This document shows, in pieces, positions 16,300-35,328 of a stretch of 64,000 nt of DNA. This DNA comes from Oikopleura dioica (taxonomy: Eukaryota; Animalia; Chordata). Below the pieces are notes generated by a model. The model was given only the letters and a program-made list of their open reading frames with translations, did not search any database and was not told where the DNA came from. The position numbers were made by a program, and so were the translations under genes. Where the stretch lies: positions 9,486,001 to 9,550,000 of the forward strand of contig OU015567.1 of the NCBI GenBank assembly GCA_907165135.1, read 5' to 3'. Each line of letters opens with the position of its first letter. The stretch's first letter is position 1.

Positions 16300-16453
16300 G
16301 ATCATAGAAAAAAACTCTGAAGACTTCTATTTTTCTGTATTTCATATATTTTCAGCCATATCAGTTCTTGAAAACATATCATTGTGCAATAAATCAAAGA
16401 CAATCTTATTTTTCTGTTTTTATTGGATGGCAGATCAGTTGATTTTTGCAAAT

Positions 16454-16738
16454 CTAAGCACCGCCTAGATAATTCACGTAAGAGAGTCGACGACGAACTT
16501 TTTCAAGATCTTTTGGTTCGTCGACTTTGTTTACTATCATGAATCGGCCAAGGTAGCTCATTAATTCCTCGTCGCAGTTGTTGTCGCAGTGGACCGTAAC
16601 CTTAGGAAAGACTGGCCATCCTTCATCAAGTTGGCTGTGGTACATTCGGAAGGAGTGCGTCCGAGCGTTGTTCAGCCCTCGGTTGAACGAAATGCTGTCG
16701 CCAAGAGCCGCTGAAAGAAGAAGAACATTAACGAGCAT
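16454..16738 (-). CDS. Intronless 94-aa secreted peptide/precursor, paralogue A (SFNRGLNNARTH; C-x3-C; C-terminal RRRL)
   Basis: ATG start, hydrophobic signal-like N-terminus, upstream TATA-like element and clear similarity to 23351-23632. Confidence 0.8.
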   Translation of the reverse strand: MLVNVLLLSAALGDSISFNRGLNNARTHSFRMYHSQLDEGWPVFPKVTVHCDNNCDEELMSYLGRFMIVNKVDEPKDLEKVRRRLSYVNYLGGA

Positions 16739-16859
16739 CGTGAGTAGCTTGTTCTTAGTTCTTTCTTGTCGGAAACAAGTCGTTGATCTGCGAACAGTAT
16801 TGAAGAAGTCAAGCTTATATTTAATTCCAAATTGTAGAGGGCATAGACGAGCACGTCGG

Positions 16860-16870
16860 AGATGGCGCTA
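16860..16870 (-). promoter_or_regulatory. TAGCGCCATCT element upstream of peptide gene A
   Basis: The identical 11-mer lies at 23241-23251 upstream of the paralogue. It sits about 40 nt upstream of a TATA-like sequence. Confidence 0.55.
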
Positions 16871-17106
16871 CAGTTTGTGATTAATTCTCGGCAGTCTGGC
16901 AAAAAAGGAAGATTTCAATTGAATGCGGCATTCAGAATGCCCTTGTATCGATCATTTTTCTTTTGTAAAGTACGAAATCTTCCCTTTTGAATGAAACCAT
17001 TATAGAATACTTATTACATAATTTTTTTCGTAAATTATTGATTCTAGCTATTTAACGAAATTCGATAGTCATATGAATTTAAAGTTTATCAACGATAAGT
17101 TATTAA

Positions 17107-18049
17107 CCTTAGCCGGCCAAAGTGTTATTTCTGACCCTACCGGCCAAATGCACCATGAGTGGTACATCACCTGCTTTTATTCTTGAAAAAATCAACTCAA
17201 AGTCTCTTACGTTCGTCTTTGGGTTTGTAACAAACCGTTTGTTTTTGGGTTCTTGGTTAGGGTTCGGATTTGGATATTAGTTTGTGTTTGGGTTGGGGTG
17301 CGGGGTGCGAGTTTTTTGAAATCATCATGGGTTTCAGCATCAGATCAAGTCCTTCAATTCGAAGAAGGAGACTATTCTAGGGTTCGCAATGAAAAAATTT
17401 TATTCACTTGAAAATATTTATTTCAATATTGCTTTTATCATAATTTTGTCTCCCTCAGTGTGAGCGCTATCAGCTATCATGTTGATCAGCTTTAGAATAA
17501 GACAAATACGCATACATATTAACTTCAAAAAGTTCATTTCAAAATTACACTAGTTAAAAATTGACCACATCATGCTTAGGTTGCAAAAAAATGCCGTTTT
17601 TCTTTCCCTTGTGTTTTGCGAACGAAAAATGATATGAAAAATCTGATTTCAGATTTGAAATCAGGATGGCCGAATTAATATCTAAATTTATTCGAATTTT
17701 AAGAATTTACCCAATTACGTCCCTCGAATTTTTCATTGCGAACCCTAGACTATTCGGCCAATTTTTCGGAAAAATACTGCCTACCGGCCAAGAGCACCAT
17801 CACTGATGGTCCATCAGTGGTGTCGGCGCCATTGTAGCAATGCACCATACATGGTGCATGCAGTTATTCTCAAAACAAGCCTTTTTCCGAACCCTAACCC
17901 TAACCAAGAGTAGTCGAAAGGTAACCTATGGGTAGCTAATCGATAAAGCCCTACAGTTTCTTCCGTTTTTCGAAACTCAAAATCACTTCGGTGGGAGACG
18001 TAATTCTTTGACCCCTGTTCCATTGATGGTGCACTCTGGCCGGCTAAGG
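17107..18049. mobile_element. Non-autonomous piggyBac-type MITE (943 bp)
   Basis: TIRs CCTTAGCCGGCCA(A/G)AGTG at both ends, flanked by TTAA (17103-17106, 18050-18053). Internal subterminal CCGGCCAA..GCACCAT repeats and AACCCT-type repeats. No transposase ORF. Confidence 0.88.
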
Positions 18050-18692
18050 TTAATTGACATCATTTTGACGTTTCGAAATATGTGGAATATATGATATCAT
18101 ATGCCGCATATGATATGCGTATCATCTAGTACGATATGCTAGCATGGAGTCTCAGAATTGATAATCTGAAAGATTCACTGACTTTAGGCTTTTTTTCATA
18201 TAACGTAAAGGGCCATTTCCAAAAAATGGGTCGATATGCGTTCCGTCGAATAAATGTTCATTTCAAGTGTCCCCTCTTAATCGATTAATAGTAAAATTTA
18301 AAAAGATAAGTGACTTGTAAGTAAGTTCCATTATGGAACAGTAATGAATATAATTTCCCGTTCGTCTGCTCAGTTTACATGAGTACAACTTTCGGCACAG
18401 TTAAGAGAGTAGATTAATATGAAGCCGGAGCCGGCTGAGTCTGTTGGCTAAATTGAATAACGAATAATCGGAGATTTGCACACGAATAAGCATTTATTGA
18501 TTAATTTAATGCGTGTTCTTTGATACACAGAAGATCAAATTAAAAGCACGAAGAAATTACCCGATTGAGAGAATAGAAAATACAAATCATGAGTGGGCAC
18601 AGCCTTTGTCAGGCAAAATGAATTCGGTTTGATTTTTAAATCTGAATTCATTTAGGTCATATTTGGTGTTTCAGCTACATTGCCGTCGAGGG

Positions 18693-20344
18693 CAGGGCTG
18701 GTAAATTAGCGCACTATTTTCTCTCGAAGAGAAAAAAATTTGCGCACTAATTTTTTTTTCGAGTCATTTTTGCGTCTTTCGCGTCTTTAGTGCGCTAAAA
18801 TGACACTAATTTTTCCTCTCGGAAATTTTCGCGTCTTTTCGAGAGCTGATCAGCGCTAAAGACGCGAAAAAAGAGGCTCTTTTCATTATCCAATGGGCTC
18901 TTCCCGGATGACAGTCTCATGGAAGACGATTTTGATCAGGGAAGAATTTCTTCAAACTGAAACTTTTTCGCAGTTTCAAATTGAAACTTTCAATCATCAA
19001 TGCATCGTAAATATGTAGGCCTCGGACGTAAAAAAGACGATTTTCACCATCCGGTCATTGTACGGGAACATGAGAGGGCTCATTCGAAAGGTCTTGATAA
19101 GGGCTTTCTATTTGACCGATAAAAAAACTGGGCCCTCCCTTTCAATTTAATTTTAAAAAAATTTCTTATTTAGTAACAAATAAGTTGAAAAGAATAAAAG
19201 TCAACTTTTGTTTGAAATTCTCTCTGTCAAGCATTTAAATGATGAGCTAAGATAAGCTCTGTTAGGGAGGTCTTCTCCCTATTTTTTTTTTATCGCTGGG
19301 CCATCCGCAGCTGGATCTTCCTGCTTCATTAATTTTCTTAATTTTTTGCCTTTCTTCTTCTTGTCGTCGTCCGACAACTTCTCATCGCTGTCCTCAAGGA
19401 AGCTAGAGCAGCCTTGACAGATACGTTCTACTTCGAGGTCTTAGAGCTCTTCTGAGCATCTTTATATAATTCTCTATTCACAGAATCATATTTATTTGAT
19501 AATTTAGAAGGGAGGTCTCCTCCCAAATTCACGCTAAGTTGATAACTGCTAATGAAGAACTCCTCTCAAAGTTGTTTATGTTTCATATTATAATATTTCT
19601 ATTGTATTTATATTATTATAAGGTAAGCATGAACTTGGGAGAAGATCTTCCTTCTCAATTATAAAATATATTTCATTTTGTTAATTAAGAATTATATTAA
19701 CAACTCGCACAAAGCTGCTCCAGCTTCAGACTATTGAGGACATCGAAGATAAGTTGTCGAACGACGACAAGAAGACGAATGGCAAGAAAGGGAAAAGGCA
19801 GGAAGAACAAGCTGCGGATGGCCCTTCAAAAAAAAATTAGGGAGAAGACCTCCCTAAGAAAGCTAATCTTAGGCGAAGAGTCTAAGCTTATCATAATGAT
19901 AAGCTGAATTTCAAATCTAGCACAGAAAGAGTTGCAAACAAAAGTTGAATTATATTTTTCCCTGTATAATATAGCCTATATTATATAGTCTATATTTGTT
20001 TCTTTATATTTATAAATAAAATTAACAAATGGATTGATAAAGTCTTTTTTGACTTCATATTAGAAATTCACGCCCTCTATTACCCTATCCACTTTATTGA
20101 AACCAAACTTTTTGAAATTCTAGTTCAGACGAAGTTTGAAATTCTCAAACTTACGTAGTCTTCAGAATTAAAGAGCCCGCGCTCATTGGCGGGCCAATCA
20201 GCAGCCCTTATTTTCGACAGTTTTCGAGACACACGCGAAAGGCACGCGAAAGTCGCTAAAAGTCTCGACAAAATAAATTCGCGCACTAATTTTAGCGCAC
20301 TTAAAATTTTCGACAGAATTTAGGACGCGAATTTACCAGCCCTG
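18693..20344. mobile_element. Non-autonomous hAT-type DNA transposon (1652 bp)
   Basis: TIR CAGGGCTGGTAAATT / AATTTACCAGCCCTG; perfect 8-bp TSD GTCGAGGG (18685-18692, 20345-20352); subterminal GCGCACTAA and CGCGTCTTT-type repeats. Confidence 0.92.
19190..19950. repeat. Long imperfect inverted repeat (foldback) inside the hAT element; arms about 19190-19530 and 19625-19950
   Basis: Arms match in reverse complement, e.g. TCTTGTCGTCGTCCGACAACTT vs AAGTTGTCGAACGACGACAAGA, and GGGCCATCCGCAGCT vs AGCTGCGGATGGCCC. A GGGAG-N5-CTCCC-type mini-hairpin occurs four times. Confidence 0.8.
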
Positions 20345-20960
20345 GTCGAGGGTTAGATTCATCAAGAATATTTAATCATGAAAACGAATCATGAATCGAC
20401 TAAATTTGACGAAAAATATTTTTATAGAAATTTATGGAAGCTTATTATAATGAAACATTTGTGATTTATCCCCCGGTAGATAATGTATATAATCTGTTAT
20501 TTTCTTCATCTATTTCTGCTCGAGGCTTACCGTTCCGGATTCGAAAAGGGGCACTGAATGTGACCTATTCAATTTGATAAATAAAATCCGTAAAAAGTTC
20601 AACCCAGCCGAAGAACACCAAGAAGGCAAGAAAAAAAGCATTGGTCGTCGAAAATCGCCATACGATAAGTTTGACTTTGCTCGAGTGATAGTTTTGCAAT
20701 ACCCCTTTCACCATAAATTCACTCTCTCAAAATAAACCAAAAAGATCAGTAACTGACTTGTAAGAGAGAACGTGTATCGCAAGATTTGTGAGGTAGAAAG
20801 CCAATGAGTACTGTACATCTTAAATTAGCAGAAGTCGCTAATGAACCTTGACCTCAACATGCAACCACAAGTGATGATCGGTTCCAGCAGCGTGGATTAT
20901 TGTAGGGATTTGATTTTTTCGTCGCTGAGGAAATTTATTTGTGACGCTTGACGAGTTACC

Positions 20961-21598
20961 ATGGATCGGTAGGGTCTATTTTAGAATTTTTTGACTAATT
21001 TTCAATTTCGAAGATCAAACAGAAAAACCAAGCGAGAGGAAATTAGAGATTTGCAGAGATACAAAGATATTGGCTATTTGACCTCCTTGGTCAAGGACCG
21101 GCAAGATAGACAGGTAAAAATGAGGTCATGATTTCCTTCCCTTGACTAAGTCTATCTTAGCATGTATCAAATGTTTCGATGTACAAAGATATCGGTCATA
21201 TGTTTCGACGAGCAACGAAGCTATTCGATCGCGTCACTGCCGTTAATAAGGTAAATCAGAATACTTTAACATAAGAGTAGATGCGCACGCATTCATCTGA
21301 GAACTTTACTCTTGGGAACATAATGTGACATTATTAATGTCCTCGAGAATTGACGTAAAAATGAGAATAAATGATGAATTTTAGGAGTCGAAAAAGAGCT
21401 CATACAATGTGCGCGAGCTGATCGAACGAGCAAAATCTACATATAAAAAAGTTGGTAAGTTGCTTGGTAGTCAAATGAAGATTTGTAATAATAACGGGAC
21501 CTTATTTAGATGACATTCTTTCCAGACCAGATGTGAAAAAGATGCGATGTGTAAGCGCAGAGACGACCCTGTCACAGTATCGAAATTTCTTCAAATGA
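20961..21598 (+). CDS. Orphan 5-exon gene, about 119-aa basic protein (MDRSNRKTKREEIRDLQRYKDIGYLTSLVKDRQDRQHVSNVSMYKDIGHMFRRATKLFDRVTAVNKESKKSSYNVRELIERAKSTYKKVDDILSRPDVKKMRCVSAETTLSQYRNFFK)
   Basis: Four phase-compatible GT-AG introns join AT-poorer exons into one open frame from ATG 20961 to TGA 21596-21598. Absent from the ORF track because each exon is short. Confidence 0.75.
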
Positions 21599-21904
21599 TT
21601 TCTTACTGTCTTTCTTCACTTCCAAATACACGAAAGTAAAGAAGTATTGCTATAATCTAATTTGAACTTGAAAATTGTTCGACTGATTAACCAACAATAT
21701 ATTTATGTTACATTACTTATGTCACATAAGTTATGTGACTTAAGTATTGTGAGAAAGGTGAACGAAGTTTAAGCCTGCCTTTCATTTTTTGACAAGCATT
21801 CTCTCTCATGGTATATGCTTTTGTCGGGAATGACGACTCAGTTCGTTGCGACTAGGCTCGTGGGACTAAGTTCGTGGAGGGGGTTATGCCGCATAACTTA
21901 TGCC

Positions 21905-22536
21905 TAGGGATTCTCACGGAAAAACAAATTGTACTCAATTTTCGTGAAACTTTCCGTCTAGATGTAATTTTTTCCGCTGATTCTAAATATGCAAAAATCA
22001 TTGTGAAATTCTGAAGAAGTGGCAAGCTATAGCCGATAAGGTCGCTAGGTGGTAAGCCCTAGTATTTGCTTCGTTTTGGAAGTAATCCTTCACTATGAGT
22101 CGGCTAATTCTTAGCAAACGGGTAGCTTACCACTTCCGGGAACTTTTTTGTTCAGATAACCCGCCGTTATTTGTGACAGATTTCCTACAGTAGGTCAAAG
22201 TGTGCACCCCGGGACCTTTGAAAGCCTTCTAGTTTCTCCCCGGTCTTCAAACTTTAACAGACTCTAGAAAAACGTCTGTTCTTTGACATATCTCAAAATC
22301 AGAGATTCAGAAGGTCGGTTAGACACATAGAGAGCAGGTTTTCTTTGGATTTTCGTAAAAACTACGCTTTTTTTATGAAAATTTAAGTTTTTGAGGTCAA
22401 TTTATGAACAAGCGTCATCTTTTTCCATATATTCAGAGGTTTTTCAATGAGATTCTGTCAAGTTACGCGAAATAGATTGCCATCATTTTGCGCGAGAAGC
22501 GCCTCGCCGCGCGCCGTTTTTCCGTGAGAATCCCTA
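21905..22536. mobile_element. Non-autonomous hAT-type MITE (632 bp)
   Basis: TIR TAGGGATTCTCACGGAAAAAC / GTTTTTCCGTGAGAATCCCTA; perfect 8-bp TSD CTTATGCC (21897-21904, 22537-22544). Confidence 0.92.
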
Positions 22537-22573
22537 CTTATGCCAGACTATTGAAAAGGGGGTATATTATATA

Positions 22574-22973
22574 TTACAGCTTATAAACAATATAACGCGT
22601 GATCCAATTTGACAATGTCACATTGAGATTGTCTATAGCGATCGTGACGTACACTGGAACGGATTCTTCATTATTTCCGGATGTAAATGCTAGTAGACGA
22701 GTGCCACGCTCGTGAAATTCTCTGTAGCAAATGCGTATAGATTCCGGAATTAATTAAAATTAACGCGAATCTCCTCATCGGGTAGAGTTTGAGATCATGT
22801 GATCAAAGAGATGAGCACGAACTTAACGAAATACTATTGATTCTGGAGTTTATTAACATGATAAAATTCTTTACCCTGTAAAGAAAGTTCTCCAGAAGAC
22901 TTATATTTTTCTCTATGCTTACTTCGATTCTAGCCGCAAAGGAGTCATCCGCCGATCGAAAGATTCGTGCCAT
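22574..22973 (-). pseudogene. Possible degraded or short spliced gene (exon-like pieces MARIFRSADDSFAARIE|GKEFYHV.. and ..MRRFA|EFHERGTRLLAFTSGNNEESVPVYVTIAIDNLNVTLSNWITRYIVYKL*)
   Basis: One 47-nt GTAAGC..CAG intron and a second GT..CAG intron of similar size, but no single stop-free frame links all pieces. Confidence 0.25.
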
Positions 22974-23240
22974 CCAATAACTTAAGAATAAAGACAAGTT
23001 TAAAAACTAATTATTTATAGGAGCATTCCTCTGCTCCAGCGTTAAGTTCAGGAGCCCTTATTTAAGGCACTACCCCTTGAGACTCAAGGCTTGAGTACCT
23101 TGGTATTATCGCTTAGAAAGTAAAACATTCGTAAAAGACGAATCATTATCAGTAATTATAAGGAAAAAGACCCTTACTGCACCTTACGAACCAGTAAATT
23201 CAAAAAGGCACGAGAGCGCTATCAATATTTTCTTTAGCTC

Positions 23241-23275
23241 TAGCGCCATCTTTGGAATAAACTCTAGTATATAAA
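23241..23275 (+). promoter_or_regulatory. TAGCGCCATCT element plus TATATAAA box upstream of peptide gene B
   Basis: Shares the 11-mer and a TTTGGAAT 8-mer with the upstream region of paralogue A. Confidence 0.55.
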
Positions 23276-23350
23276 CACGCGAAAATAAAAGAAGCCATCT
23301 GACTTTGAGAAAGTTCTAAAATCGGGAACATCTGCTTTTCCTACCGAAAA

Positions 23351-23632
23351 ATGAAAGTCGCTAAATTCAGCTCTTTTGTTTTGACCGTCTTTGGCGACGC
23401 ACTTAGCTTCAATCGCGGATTGAACAACGGTCGAACCCACTTGCTTCGATCTCAGGAAACCCCGAATCCGATGGCATTTCGCTGTGCTCGATCTGATGAT
23501 TGTACTCTTGAAGAGTACATGGCAATTGCTCATCTCAATCGAATTCAAGGAAATCAACGAAGAGAGCGCACCCACAATGGCAACTTCAATCGAAAGCGGC
23601 TCTACCGACAAAAGATGATGGGTCGCTATTAA
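23351..23632 (+). CDS. Intronless 93-aa secreted peptide/precursor, paralogue B (SFNRGLNNGRTH; C-x5-C; C-terminal RKRL)
   Basis: ATG start, signal-like N-terminus, TATA box about 80 nt upstream; GDALSFNRGLNNGRTH is nearly identical to GDSISFNRGLNNARTH of paralogue A. Confidence 0.8.
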   Translation: MKVAKFSSFVLTVFGDALSFNRGLNNGRTHLLRSQETPNPMAFRCARSDDCTLEEYMAIAHLNRIQGNQRRERTHNGNFNRKRLYRQKMMGRY

Positions 23633-23849: not shown

Positions 23850-26800
23850 CTGAAGATATGGCTCTCCTATCATGGAAAGGTGCTGATATCAGGGTTTGTT
23901 CAATTGAAGATAACTTAGGCGCTATTGCCTCTTCTGACCATTTTGGAGTGGTGTCAGTCTGACCATATCTAATTTTGTCGTCAGAAGAATTTTTACGAAG
24001 TTTGAAAGAGAACACGAGAGAAATCAAGAACCATGAAGCTCCTTGGCTCACTTGTTCCAATAGGCCAGGGATAATAGTACAGAAGCTTTGACTTAGCATT
24101 ATCATTAAACCGGCTTGCCAGTGCTTCGCTGAGCCTCAGATTATAGTTATTGTCAATATATGGATATTCTTTGCAAGCATTTCATCATCTCTGTATAAGT
24201 AATGTCACAAAAACAACTTGCCCAAGTTTGCTCAAACGAAAGTTGGCTCTTAGATGAAGATGTGATTTGTAGCAAAGGGAATTTAAAAGATTCCTACTGC
24301 ACAATGTTCTGTCCGAAAGGGCTTGAACCCGTCATGTCGGAATGTCTCTGTGGCAAGCAATGCAAGTGGATGCCTGCGCGGCCCTTTTGTACAAACCCGG
24401 CAGATTATGAGATGTACTACGTAGATTCTTGGGATGTCACAGAAGAAGAAGTTCAGCTAAGGATTTCAATGATTTGACGTAACATCACTATCTGTTTTTT
24501 ATCTTGAATAGAAATAGACTTCATTGTTCTTTTTCTTCTATTATTTCATGTAGCATTAGGCCTACTATTTGCGATAATTCCATCTAAAAAAATCCATCAA
24601 TAGACACAAAAGCCAGAAGTATCTCCCGGATTATCTGCAGATTCAATCGAATCACCAGAAAAATACAAGTCGGTTAATGCAATTGCTCCACCAAAATGGA
24701 CAAATAAAGAAGAAGAGACGACCACCGAATATGTAAGCACAACAGTAGTTGCAACTACTTTATCAACAACGGAGTCGCTGATCATTTCGCTCTCTACCCG
24801 AGATCCAAAAGATGATTCTGACCGAGCAAACAGCGAGAAAAAAACTAGTGGGAAACGAACTGAGGCTGAAAAAGCAGTGCTAAAACTTCAAAAACAGCAG
24901 TTGCGCAAAGCAGCGAAAAAATCTGCGAAATTGGCTGCGAAAGAAAAAACACAGAAGGAAGTCGAGAAGCCGGAAAAAGTTAGTAAGCCAGTGAAAGTGG
25001 AAAACATACCAGAGCGTGTGTGTGAGACACCATCCTGGTTCGAATTCGTGTCCTGCTCAGATGGGCGTCAAAAGAATTCAGTCTGTGAGACCTCCTGCTA
25101 TGGTCAAGGGATCACATTCGACAAAAAAGAAATGAAGTCCACCTGTCAGTGTACAGAAGGTGTCTGCGAGTGGGACAACAAGAATGGACCTTCTTGCGTC
25201 ATCATTAAGTCAGAAAAGAATGTTACTGAGGATAAGGAGAAAGAAGTTCCAGACTTTTGCGAGGAGCTAGAATGGCTCGAATCTGGAGATGTCATCTGCT
25301 CAGAGAAGAATCATAAAGACTCCGTTTGCCTGATGAAAAGCTGTTCAAAGAGGCAGATCTCGACGGCGGTAAAATGCAAATGCTATACGAAAGATGACGA
25401 TGTCTCAAAATGCAAATGGCAGGAAGAGCTTAAGGATGACTTTACCAAAAGAGGTAAAGTAACAAGAAGAAATAAACAATTATATCTTATTATAATTACT
25501 GTTGTTTTGAGAATGACATATCTTGAGTTGACTGGATCTTAGAACAGACACCTTTTCTATTGTCTGCTAGCTCGATGATTGTAAATCTGAATAATTTCAA
25601 GGAAAAGCTGTCCATTCAAGAATGATCCAAGAATGCAAATTCAAATTTCCAGCTATGTTTTTCTTATTACAAAGTATAATTAAGGTCCTCGATGTATTCG
25701 TCAAGAAAAACGAGGACTAACAGACGAACGATGCGAAGAAGAAGACTGGTACGCATCTTCATTTGGCGCCAATCCTAAAATAGAGTGCACAAAGATGAAT
25801 AAGGATAAATCCGTCTGCCAGCATACTCAGTGCAAGAAAAACCAGGCGCCGATTCCAGGTAACTCTATTTATTATTTCAAAGAGAATCTAAACCGAAAAT
25901 GAAGCTACGTGCATGTGCTTCGACCGCTCAAGTGATACCAAGAAATGCAAGTGGAATAGAAGGCCCGATTGCGGAAATCCAGATAAAGTCGAGGATCCAA
26001 TTTCGCTCGGATTTAGGTAACGCTAGACCTCTCTAAATCAACAATTATCTGACGGAAATAAGGAGCTCGCAACGATGCCATAAGCCAACGAATTGGGATT
26101 ATATCAATGCTGTCAAGTGTACTAACGGATACAACAAGGTACATTTTTCCTCGATTAATTTACTGATTTCGATCATAGGGATCTGAATGCAGGATCAATC
26201 GATGTCCAGGCACAATGGTTCAGGCAACAGCAACATGCTCATGCTATGGCATTCGATGCACCTGGCTCTACGATCATGGAGAAAAGCAGCCGACATGTGT
26301 TCACGAGCCGCAGCCAAGCTCCAAATCTCAACAAGGCAAGTCTGATAAGAACATTCTAAACAAATCATCGATTCTATCTCAACTTGATTTTCTAAAATGA
26401 ACATTTTCGATCTCTAAATGAACAATTCAAGGCGATGGAATGTTGAGCGATGTTGGTATGGGCGGTTTAATGGAGGTGGAAGAACTTGAAGAGCAAGACA
26501 TTGAATCTTTTGGTAAATGAGTCTTTGTTAAGACTTTCACAGATTTTTTCAAGACTTCTCAAGCCGGGAATGTGATTCGATCGAAAATGGTTACACAATC
26601 TGCACAAGTAGAAACCACGAGGGCAGTAAATGCCGTCGCCTTGACTGTCAGTCAACAGAAACCATCTGTGTCTGTGGAGAGGTACGTTACTTATGATTTT
26701 TTCCAGTCACACGATTCTCACATGTGACTTTGTGAGGCTGAGTCTGATTGTCCGAAAATAATTTGCTTATCAAGGATTTTGCGCGAAAAAATTGCTCAGA

Positions 26801-35054: not shown

Positions 35055-35237
35055 TTAAAGCCATTTGAGAGCTGCAGCTCGTCGAATCTGCATCATTTTA
35101 ATTTGTTGAGCAGTTGGTTGTCTGATGACAGTTTGGCTAGCGAATTGTCGAGATCGGATAGCTTTGAGATGGTATTGAGCGGCGGTGGAAGCCGAGACTG
35201 AGGCAATGAGAGCGATGAGGAGAACGAGAAACTTCAT
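35055..35237 (-). CDS. Intronless 60-aa secreted cationic peptide (MKFLVLLIALIASVSA|STAAQYHLKAIRSRQFASQTVIRQPTAQQIKMMQIRRAAALKWL)
   Basis: Textbook signal peptide; A-rich leader CAAACAAAAAATG; TATTTAAA box about 55 nt upstream; mature region has 8 K/R and no D/E. Confidence 0.85.
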   Translation of the reverse strand: MKFLVLLIALIASVSASTAAQYHLKAIRSRQFASQTVIRQPTAQQIKMMQIRRAAALKWL

Positions 35238-35319
35238 TTTTTGTTTGTTTTGAGTTGCTAGTTTGATGCTTCTGATGCTGACTGTAGCTGTTTAAATACT
35301 CTTTGAAGAGGCCTCGACT

Positions 35320-35328
35320 GTGGCGCTA
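35320..35328 (-). promoter_or_regulatory. TAGCGCCAC element upstream of the cationic peptide gene
   Basis: Same TAGCGCCA core, same orientation and similar spacing to the TATA box (about 35291-35298) as in peptide genes A and B. Confidence 0.45.

Follow-up and report, generated by a model that had tools for sequence, protein, structure and literature searches.

Two divergent single-exon genes of Oikopleura dioica appear to be members of an undescribed larvacean-specific family of predicted secreted peptides

Genes A and B and their orthologues

We examined a 64,000-nucleotide (nt) stretch of the Oikopleura dioica genome (GCA_907165135.1, contig OU015567.1, C5 in the coordinates below, positions 9,486,001 to 9,550,000 of the forward strand), hereafter the window, which carries two small single-exon genes that we call A and B. 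O. dioica serves as a model chordate; its genome is very compact, here 64.3 Mb in 19 contigs, and many ancestral gene families have been lost from it. Gene A (16454..16738, minus strand) encodes 94 amino acids (aa) plus a stop codon and is entry P0001 of a public protein set. Gene B (23351..23632, plus strand) encodes 93 aa plus a stop codon and is absent from the public protein collections searched. The two genes are divergently oriented, with their start codons 6.6 kb apart. An initial annotation of the window had described them as a divergent pair of intronless genes for novel secreted peptides with a common SFNRGLNN motif, and the positions, strands, and lengths of both reading frames were as it described. 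The absence of introns is supported by environmental orthologues, in which the start and stop of both A and B are unchanged.

Each protein opens with a predicted signal peptide, in agreement with the signal-like N-termini first noticed. By rule-based prediction only, this spans 13 aa in A (16700..16738, minus), with Ala at −3 and Gly at −1, and 15 aa in B (23351..23395, plus), with Val at −3 and Gly at −1; both have a hydrophobic core and Asp at +1. Directly after it comes a conserved 15-residue segment, which we call the head, delimited by BLASTP and the family alignment: DSISFNRGLNNARTH in A (16655..16699, minus) and DALSFNRGLNNGRTH in B (23396..23440, plus). Further along, A has Cys-x3-Cys followed by DEELM (16559..16588, minus) and B has Cys-x5-Cys followed by TLEEYM (23483..23521, plus), so that the Cys pair and EE(L/Y)M reported initially are present in both; it is confined to the A/B branch and missing from most of the family described below. 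At the C-terminus, A carries RRR and a Tyr-containing tail (16457..16495, minus), and B carries RKR and the tail LYRQKMMGRY (23591..23629, plus). An AATAAA polyadenylation signal lies ~30 nt past the stop of A (16419..16424, minus); none is evident after the stop of B.

The similarity between A and B is confined to one region. BLASTP returned a single block, residues 12-31 of A against 14-33 of B, with 14 of 20 positions identical (E = 1e-08), corresponding to GDxxSFNRGLNNxRTH and bearing out the shared motif. At the DNA level, differences within this block are mainly synonymous, including a TCG/AGC serine switch and AAC/AAT, CGA/CGC, GGG/GGA, and CTG/TTG pairs, which indicates constraint on the protein rather than a DNA repeat.

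Both genes have orthologues in environmental DNA. That of A (P0003, contigs L008/L009) gave a ratio of nonsynonymous to synonymous substitution rates (dN/dS) of 0.25 at dS 0.61, and that of B (P0002, contig L010), which is 80% identical, gave 0.28 at dS 0.33 (both Nei-Gojobori). Contig L010 is genomic DNA, and the Cys-rich gene that lies downstream of B is retained on it with 98% identity at the protein level; by comparison with this neighbor, B evolves much faster. More distant B-type genes were found at L016:123-404 and on contig L017 (P0005), with the head DQL[ST]FNRQLNAN..H. The database protein P0004 (162 aa; L016:123-407) is an artifact of read-through of a TGA stop, and the real ORF (open reading frame) is 94 aa long. 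Because contig L017 carries a neighboring gene with 65% identity to one that lies 32 kb from B in the O. dioica genome, B has an orthologue in a clearly different species. The Cys pair is retained in P0002-P0005. Searching the genome with A or B also revealed a paralogue of A on contig C4 (67% identical, 88 aa, without RRR) and a Cys-free 75-aa family member on contig C1.

Chance ORFs or a DNA repeat were ruled out by the synonymous differences, the full-length orthologous ORFs, dN/dS of ~0.25-0.28, and the unrelated flanks of the paralogues. We also ruled out that A and B are first exons of larger genes, given that start and stop are conserved, TATA or TATA-like elements lie upstream of both, AATAAA follows A, and a neighboring gene begins soon after B. 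A and B therefore look like real single-exon genes with predicted secreted products. No transcripts were seen among the environmental contigs, and exact-protein look-ups of A and B for expression were blank.

The Asp-head multigene family

The genome holds far more than a pair of such genes. A profile iterated from each round's matches against the genome contigs of O. dioica OKI2018_I69 grew from 10 to 27 to 45 matches, and we count at least 43 intact single-exon family genes, one identical duplicate pair included, with profile-search E-values of 4e-18 to 1.5e-4 for the 43 intact ORFs. The "pair" of the initial annotation was thus an undercount, and A and B are atypical members, forming an "SFNRG" branch with a Cys pair, and A has a neutral isoelectric point (pI). 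The search for SFNRGLNN-type motifs that had been proposed, run here in the O. dioica genome and in marine metagenomes, found further members. A degenerate FNRGxNN pattern returned from the genome the same four genes (A, B, and those on C4 and C1) and one match at C5:9885110, which is without a signal peptide and is probably due to chance.

All 43 genes share one layout. A predicted signal peptide of 12-20 aa (in three members, a pre-sequence of 26-32 residues) is followed directly by Asp, the head, and a variable basic body; with Asp as mature residue 1, we refer to them as the Asp-head family. The head consensus is D-[LS]-[IL]-x-[FY]-N-R-x-x-N-N-x-x-x-H. Three positions are invariant, with Asp at position 1, Arg at 7, and Asn at 10 in 43/43. 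Asn predominates at position 6 (38/43, with Gln in 5/43), as do Ile or Leu at position 3 (38/43) and Asn at position 11 (33/43). Other positions are looser: Leu at position 2 (27/43), Gly (19/43) or Ser (11/43) at position 4, Phe (14/43), Tyr (12/43), or Gln (9/43) at position 5, and His at position 15 (25/43). Just before the head, residue −1 is Ala in 24 members, Gly in 11, Ser in 3, Cys in 2, and Arg in 3, and residue −3 is Val, Ala, or Ser in 38; by the rule-based reading, all 43 have a hydrophobic core and conform to the −3/−1 rule. Mature chains measure 40-95 aa (median 58) and are strongly basic, with a median pI of 11.0 and a pI above 9.5 in 40/43. The exceptions include A, whose net charge is 0, and the C4 paralogue, both with a pI of 7. 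Most members are Cys-free (0-2 Cys per protein).

The family is spread over four large contigs; most of its genes are dispersed, and there are a few small clusters. Two loci, L024 and L025 (C1:3321012-3321278 and C1:3330206-3330472), encode identical 89-aa proteins 9.2 kb apart, indicating a very recent segmental duplication. L093 (C1:5550524-5550721) is a family match broken by two stops and probably a pseudogene. L094 (C5:13413114-13413176) is a partial A/B-like look-alike, C/DSLSFNRHRF (here and below, a slash marks the boundary before Asp), with C-x2-C and without Asn10, and is possibly a further member. When the 26 genomic members of alignment A6 were sought in a public 5.8-billion-protein collection, only two were found, namely A (P0001) and g5635 (P0006, listed as Oidioi.mRNA.OKI2018_I69.chr2.g5635 [Oikopleura dioica]), so most of the family appears to be unannotated.

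Environmental DNA extends the family beyond this genome. In one exact-pattern scan with the back-translated DLIG[YF]NRLGNN (33-nt, degenerate), 33 contigs from three Joint Genome Institute metagenome samples matched, and 33/33 motif copies fall within 60-117-aa ORFs that have, in order, a signal peptide, Asp, the head, and a basic tail. At the level of loci, L105 had no qualifying ORF and L124 had two. On one Ga0115008 contig, a neighboring gene is 89% identical to the O. dioica genome, indicating that this sample contains a close O. dioica lineage. AT-rich contigs of sample Ga0208946 account for 25 of the 33 matches; in these members (within loci L097-L129), the residue before Asp1 is mostly Cys (SC/D, QC/D, NC/D) rather than the Ala or Gly of O. 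dioica. Relatives of the family were seen only in larvacean-type DNA, consistent with the lineage-specific origin first suggested.

Constraint on the protein is strongest at the head. With 17 pairs of orthologues or recent paralogues pooled, the 15-residue head had a dN/dS of 0.10 (0.10-0.16 for the motif), compared with 0.36 in the signal peptide and 0.31 in the remainder. The proposed selection on the motif is therefore evident in the comparison of 0.10 for the motif with 0.31 for the rest, and the body is itself under purifying selection and not neutral.

The initial annotation had also proposed the C-terminal RRR and RKR as possible convertase sites. These tribasic sites do exist in A and B, but the role assigned to them was not supported: RKR of B reads RTR in its orthologue, and RRR of A is reduced to RR in the A orthologue and replaced by PR in the C4 paralogue. 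By contrast, LYRQKMMGRY after the B site is identical in the B orthologue. Dibasic sites showed no excess behind the head either. At mature positions 13-24, they occur in 23 of 79 distinct members, compared with 31.6 ± 4.3 in shuffled sequences, and no conserved cleavage site was found just after the head in this comparison. Instead, basic residues increase along the chain, from ~10% in the head to ~31% near the C-terminus. A candidate Gly amidation signal, NN-G-R after the head, is found only in B and its orthologue; A-type genes have Ala there, and most members have neither.

Some members do have sites of convertase type, placed ahead of the motif and not at the C-terminus. In three genomic members, a furin-type propeptide end directly precedes Asp1 (L048, RRTRR/DLISWNR; L085, RSGR/DLIGYNR; L089, RQRR/DLIGFNR). 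The metagenomic member L104 (548-841, Ga0208946) has RRTTR/DLIGYNR, preceded in the propeptide by a decayed extra head copy, DLIGTNL, which hints at an ancestral two-copy precursor. Furin-type sites were seen only upstream of Asp1 and in these four members; in A and B, no dibasic site precedes the motif, and the signal peptide abuts the head. By either route, through a signal peptide directly before Asp or a furin-type R-x-x-R cut, the mature chain would start with a free Asp1.

A second candidate motif lies at the other end of the chain. Metagenomic tails often have NRR-x-x-Y-x-x-x-M near the C-terminus, and the tail of B resembles it, although weakly (8.7 bits against a profile hidden Markov model, HMM). 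With this tail HMM, built from metagenomic members, O. dioica tails were not separable from shuffled sequences, and only B, L084, and L091 exceeded 8 bits. The tail motif is suggestive only.

Promoter elements and 3′ signals further support the genes. Upstream of A, a module at 16814..16870 (minus) comprises TAGCGCCA (16863-16870) and the TATA-like AAATATAAG (~16814-16823), both conserved in L008. Its counterpart upstream of B (23241..23275, plus) comprises TAGCGCCA (23241-23248) and TATATAAA (23268-23275), and the GCGCC core and TATA-type box of B recur in L010, L016, and L017. In A, B, and their orthologues, the TAGCGCCA-type element precedes the TATA or TATA-like box by 25-35 nt, and the box precedes the ATG by ~65-95 nt; in A and in B, the TATA or TATA-like element lies 75-85 nt upstream. 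Across the family, a TATA element at −120 to −25 is present in 28/43 members, compared with 11 in the antisense control, and AATAAA occurs within 150 nt past the stop in 31/43, compared with 17/43 in antisense. Adenine occupies position −3 of the ATG in 38/43. GCGCCA is found at −70 to −155 in 10/43. The window holds four copies of TAGCGCCA, with 0.9 expected; one (35321-35328) lies ~20 nt before a TATTTAAA box in the upstream region (35290-35328) of an unrelated 60-aa ORF (35055-35237, minus) with a signal peptide and without the Asp-head.

Possible roles of the family

Searches for a known relative were consistently empty, in line with the initial failure to recognize the family. Pfam scans of A, B, and 30 members (E up to 10) gave no recurrent or significant family, a PDB profile search gave no sequence match at E up to 10, and two word-index protein searches returned no known family. 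An HMMER profile search of 1.84 billion proteins found only larvacean-type matches, and the motif strings were not found in a text collection of 8.4 million papers and preprints. Neither a known family nor a repeat was thus matched by the Pfam, PDB, and profile searches or by the largely synonymous block. For A, an AlphaFold2 (AF2) model from 49 sequences, made with the signal peptide attached, had a mean predicted local distance difference test score (pLDDT) of 76.6, with ~92 over the head, and showed three helices; its predicted template modeling score of 0.32 indicates helical segments without a confident compact fold. A model from eight sequences was poor (pLDDT 57). Foldseek against the PDB returned nothing below E = 4.6. 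In the ESM Atlas, the neighbors of a typical member were mostly neuropeptide precursors (PDH, DH31, NPF, galanin), all with scores of ≤0.90, and A gave no usable match; these neighbors are only a lead, at the level of class. Taken together, A and B appear to be divergent members of a previously undescribed, larvacean-specific multigene family. The sequence family is new, but its general kind, that of lineage-restricted small secreted peptides, is familiar; its architecture is unusual and well defined.

We tentatively favor, at somewhat below an even chance, the reading that the family consists of signaling or recognition ligands with an N-terminal message. The head would be a shared recognition element docking to a common partner, most likely a receptor, and the variable basic body and tail could adjust specificity or anchor the molecule on anionic surfaces or matrix. 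Intact chains of 40-95 aa are probably the active form of most members, unlike classical prohormones, which are cut at conserved dibasic sites, and the RRR and RKR of A and B would be part of the basic tail and not conserved cleavage sites. A fuller version is possible but less than probable: a larvacean-specific ligand system in which dozens of helical paralogues all engage one receptor class through a free D-L-I-G-Y-N-R-L-G-N-N head, with the bodies giving specificity, or else a first larvacean antimicrobial arsenal.

Several points weigh against a ligand role. The signal peptides are predicted by rule only, and the fold model was made with the signal peptide attached. The head bears no recognizable receptor-ligand signature, and at least 43 paralogues with one common head would be unusual for a hormone system. 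High pI, helicity, expansion, and TATA promoters would suit antimicrobial or matrix-binding peptides equally well, and A and the C4 paralogue have a neutral pI. Finally, the C-terminal motif is statistically inseparable from composition in the O. dioica set.

The most substantial competing account, which we nevertheless consider unlikely, is that these are cationic antimicrobial peptides whose basic helical body disrupts microbial membranes, with the head serving biogenesis, sorting, or target recognition. Such peptides are secreted, net positive, and helical, and by prediction the family is all three (pI above 9.5 in 40/43; AF2 helices). The median pI of 11, the mostly Cys-free and predicted helical chains of 40-95 mature residues, the large, dispersed, fast-diverging gene set with its common TATA promoters, and the rapid evolution of B (80% identity beside 98% for the neighboring gene) all fit this account. 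However, the variable part is under purifying rather than positive selection (omega, or dN/dS, of ~0.3), and A and the C4 paralogue are not cationic (A having no net charge). In known antimicrobial precursors, the conserved pro-piece is removed; here, the mature chain retains the most conserved part, and no conserved cleavage site follows. The same contrast emerges from close parallels such as Hydra arminins and frog-skin peptide precursors. These are likewise lineage-restricted and expanded, with a conserved signal and N-terminal region and a variable cationic helical remainder. Yet what is conserved in them is an acidic pro-piece that is cut off at a conserved basic site. The Asp-head, by contrast, is neutral and forms the N-terminus of the mature chain, no conserved cleavage site follows it, and the variable part of the Asp-head family, at omega ~0.3, is not under positive selection.

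A role in the house or mucus matrix, likewise raised initially, seems improbable to us; the basic tails would attach to acidic polysaccharides, and the head would be held by some common component of the house. O. dioica renews its secreted house repeatedly, and short, intronless, TATA-driven genes for strongly basic bodies would be well suited to bulk secretion. On the other hand, repeats, Cys-rich domains, and known matrix domains are all missing from the family. In a comparison with the oikosins, the proteins of the house, the motif strings were absent from the supplement text of the house-proteome paper (Hosp et al. 2012), a weak test, as this 58-kb text may contain no sequences and most genes of the family are unannotated. 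We regard as very unlikely the proposal that A and B are classical prohormones cut at RRR or RKR to release a short tail peptide containing Tyr, Met, and Gly. The tribasic sites themselves, the identity of the tail after the site in B and its orthologue, and the many metagenomic members with NRR-x-x-Y-x-x-x-M near the C-terminus would accord with such processing. Against it stand the replacement of RKR by RTR in the B orthologue and of RRR by RR in the A orthologue and PR in the C4 paralogue, the lack of a clear amidation or other processing signature, and the strongest constraint falling at the opposite end of the protein.

Least probable is that the family comprises divergent homologues of a known bilaterian neuropeptide (NPS/NG peptide, corazonin/GnRH-type, galanin/Ci-GALP, or PDF). 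In GnRH and corazonin precursors, the peptide directly follows the signal peptide, the same arrangement as in the Asp-head family, and the Atlas neighbors include PDH, DH31, and galanin precursors. The closest resemblance is that of SFNRGLN in A and B to SFRNGVG of neuropeptide S (NPS) and amphioxus SFRNGVamide (PMC4422128). Both are chordate secreted peptides, but the order is N-R and not R-N, position 8 is Gly in only 6/43 and Gln in the distant B-type genes, and the family has no neurophysin domain, no flanking dibasic sites, and no clear amidation sites. The family-wide consensus DLIG[YF]NRLGNN is still further from NPS. Moreover, no Pfam Galanin, GnRH, or Pigment_DH match was obtained in 30 members at E up to 10, and, according to Semmens et al. 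(2015; PMC4422128), O. dioica has neither a receptor of the NPS/CCAP type nor any NG precursor. The look-alikes to NPS/NG, corazonin, galanin, PTH, and PDF that can be picked out by eye are short and fail against the family-wide consensus or in the Pfam scan. For galanin/Ci-GALP, there is no Trp2 or GWT and no PF01296 match in 30 members at E up to 10, only an Atlas score of 0.84.

If the family does consist of ligands, its nearest analogues in design are PTH, ghrelin/motilin, and GnRH/corazonin. These also have a small precursor of 55-110 aa, a conserved message at the mature N-terminus, and a remaining chain that is more variable and predicted to be helical, and prepro-PTH shares with some Asp-head members an R-x-x-R propeptide cut that exposes the message. 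They differ in that no similarity was found by Pfam, PDB profile, or large profile search, the Asp-head family is without a conserved C-terminal processing or amidation site, and it has dozens of paralogues instead of one or few. Chemokine-type ligands offer a functional analogy only, with their required free N-terminal signaling element and basic, glycan-binding C-terminal helix; Asp-head proteins are much smaller, are without the chemokine fold or conserved disulfides, and have no sequence or structural match.

Whatever their role, more than 40 small secreted-peptide genes, mostly unannotated, would make up a sizeable hidden part of the O. dioica secretome. Annotation pipelines would, moreover, be overlooking entire families of single-exon micro-genes in the larvacean lineage. 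The motif, HMM, and gene list are concrete reagents for questions of signaling, defense, or house-building. Should the ligand reading be true, the family would represent a home-grown signaling repertoire in a chordate from which many ancestral peptide systems have disappeared.

Surroundings of the two genes

Most of the 6.6-kb spacer that separates A from B derives from transposons. It contains a nested inverted-repeat element (17102..18054, unstranded) that resembles a miniature inverted-repeat transposable element (MITE) and has dozens of copies in the genome. Beyond it lies a 1.65-kb foldback or inverted-repeat element (18693..20344, unstranded) with more than 100 matching genome pieces at up to 99% identity. 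These MITE-like and foldback elements have long inverted arms, and pieces elsewhere in the genome match them at 65-99% identity. One short segment, 337-464 of the query (window ~19016-19143), has further copies at 98-99% identity and has the appearance of a small nested element of very recent origin. A pair of perfect inverted repeats of 21 nt, separated by 590 nt and with arms that begin at 21905 and 22516, delimits possibly another small element (21905..22536, unstranded). The head-to-head genes A and B were probably once closer together.

An Rfam scan of 14-27 kb of the window found no RNA family. Downstream of B, ORFs at 24202-25542 (plus) encode repeated Cys-rich modules (C...W...C...C..C.C...C.W...C) with no Pfam match, and the first exon of this Cys-rich gene, at 98% protein identity in L010, is far more conserved than B.

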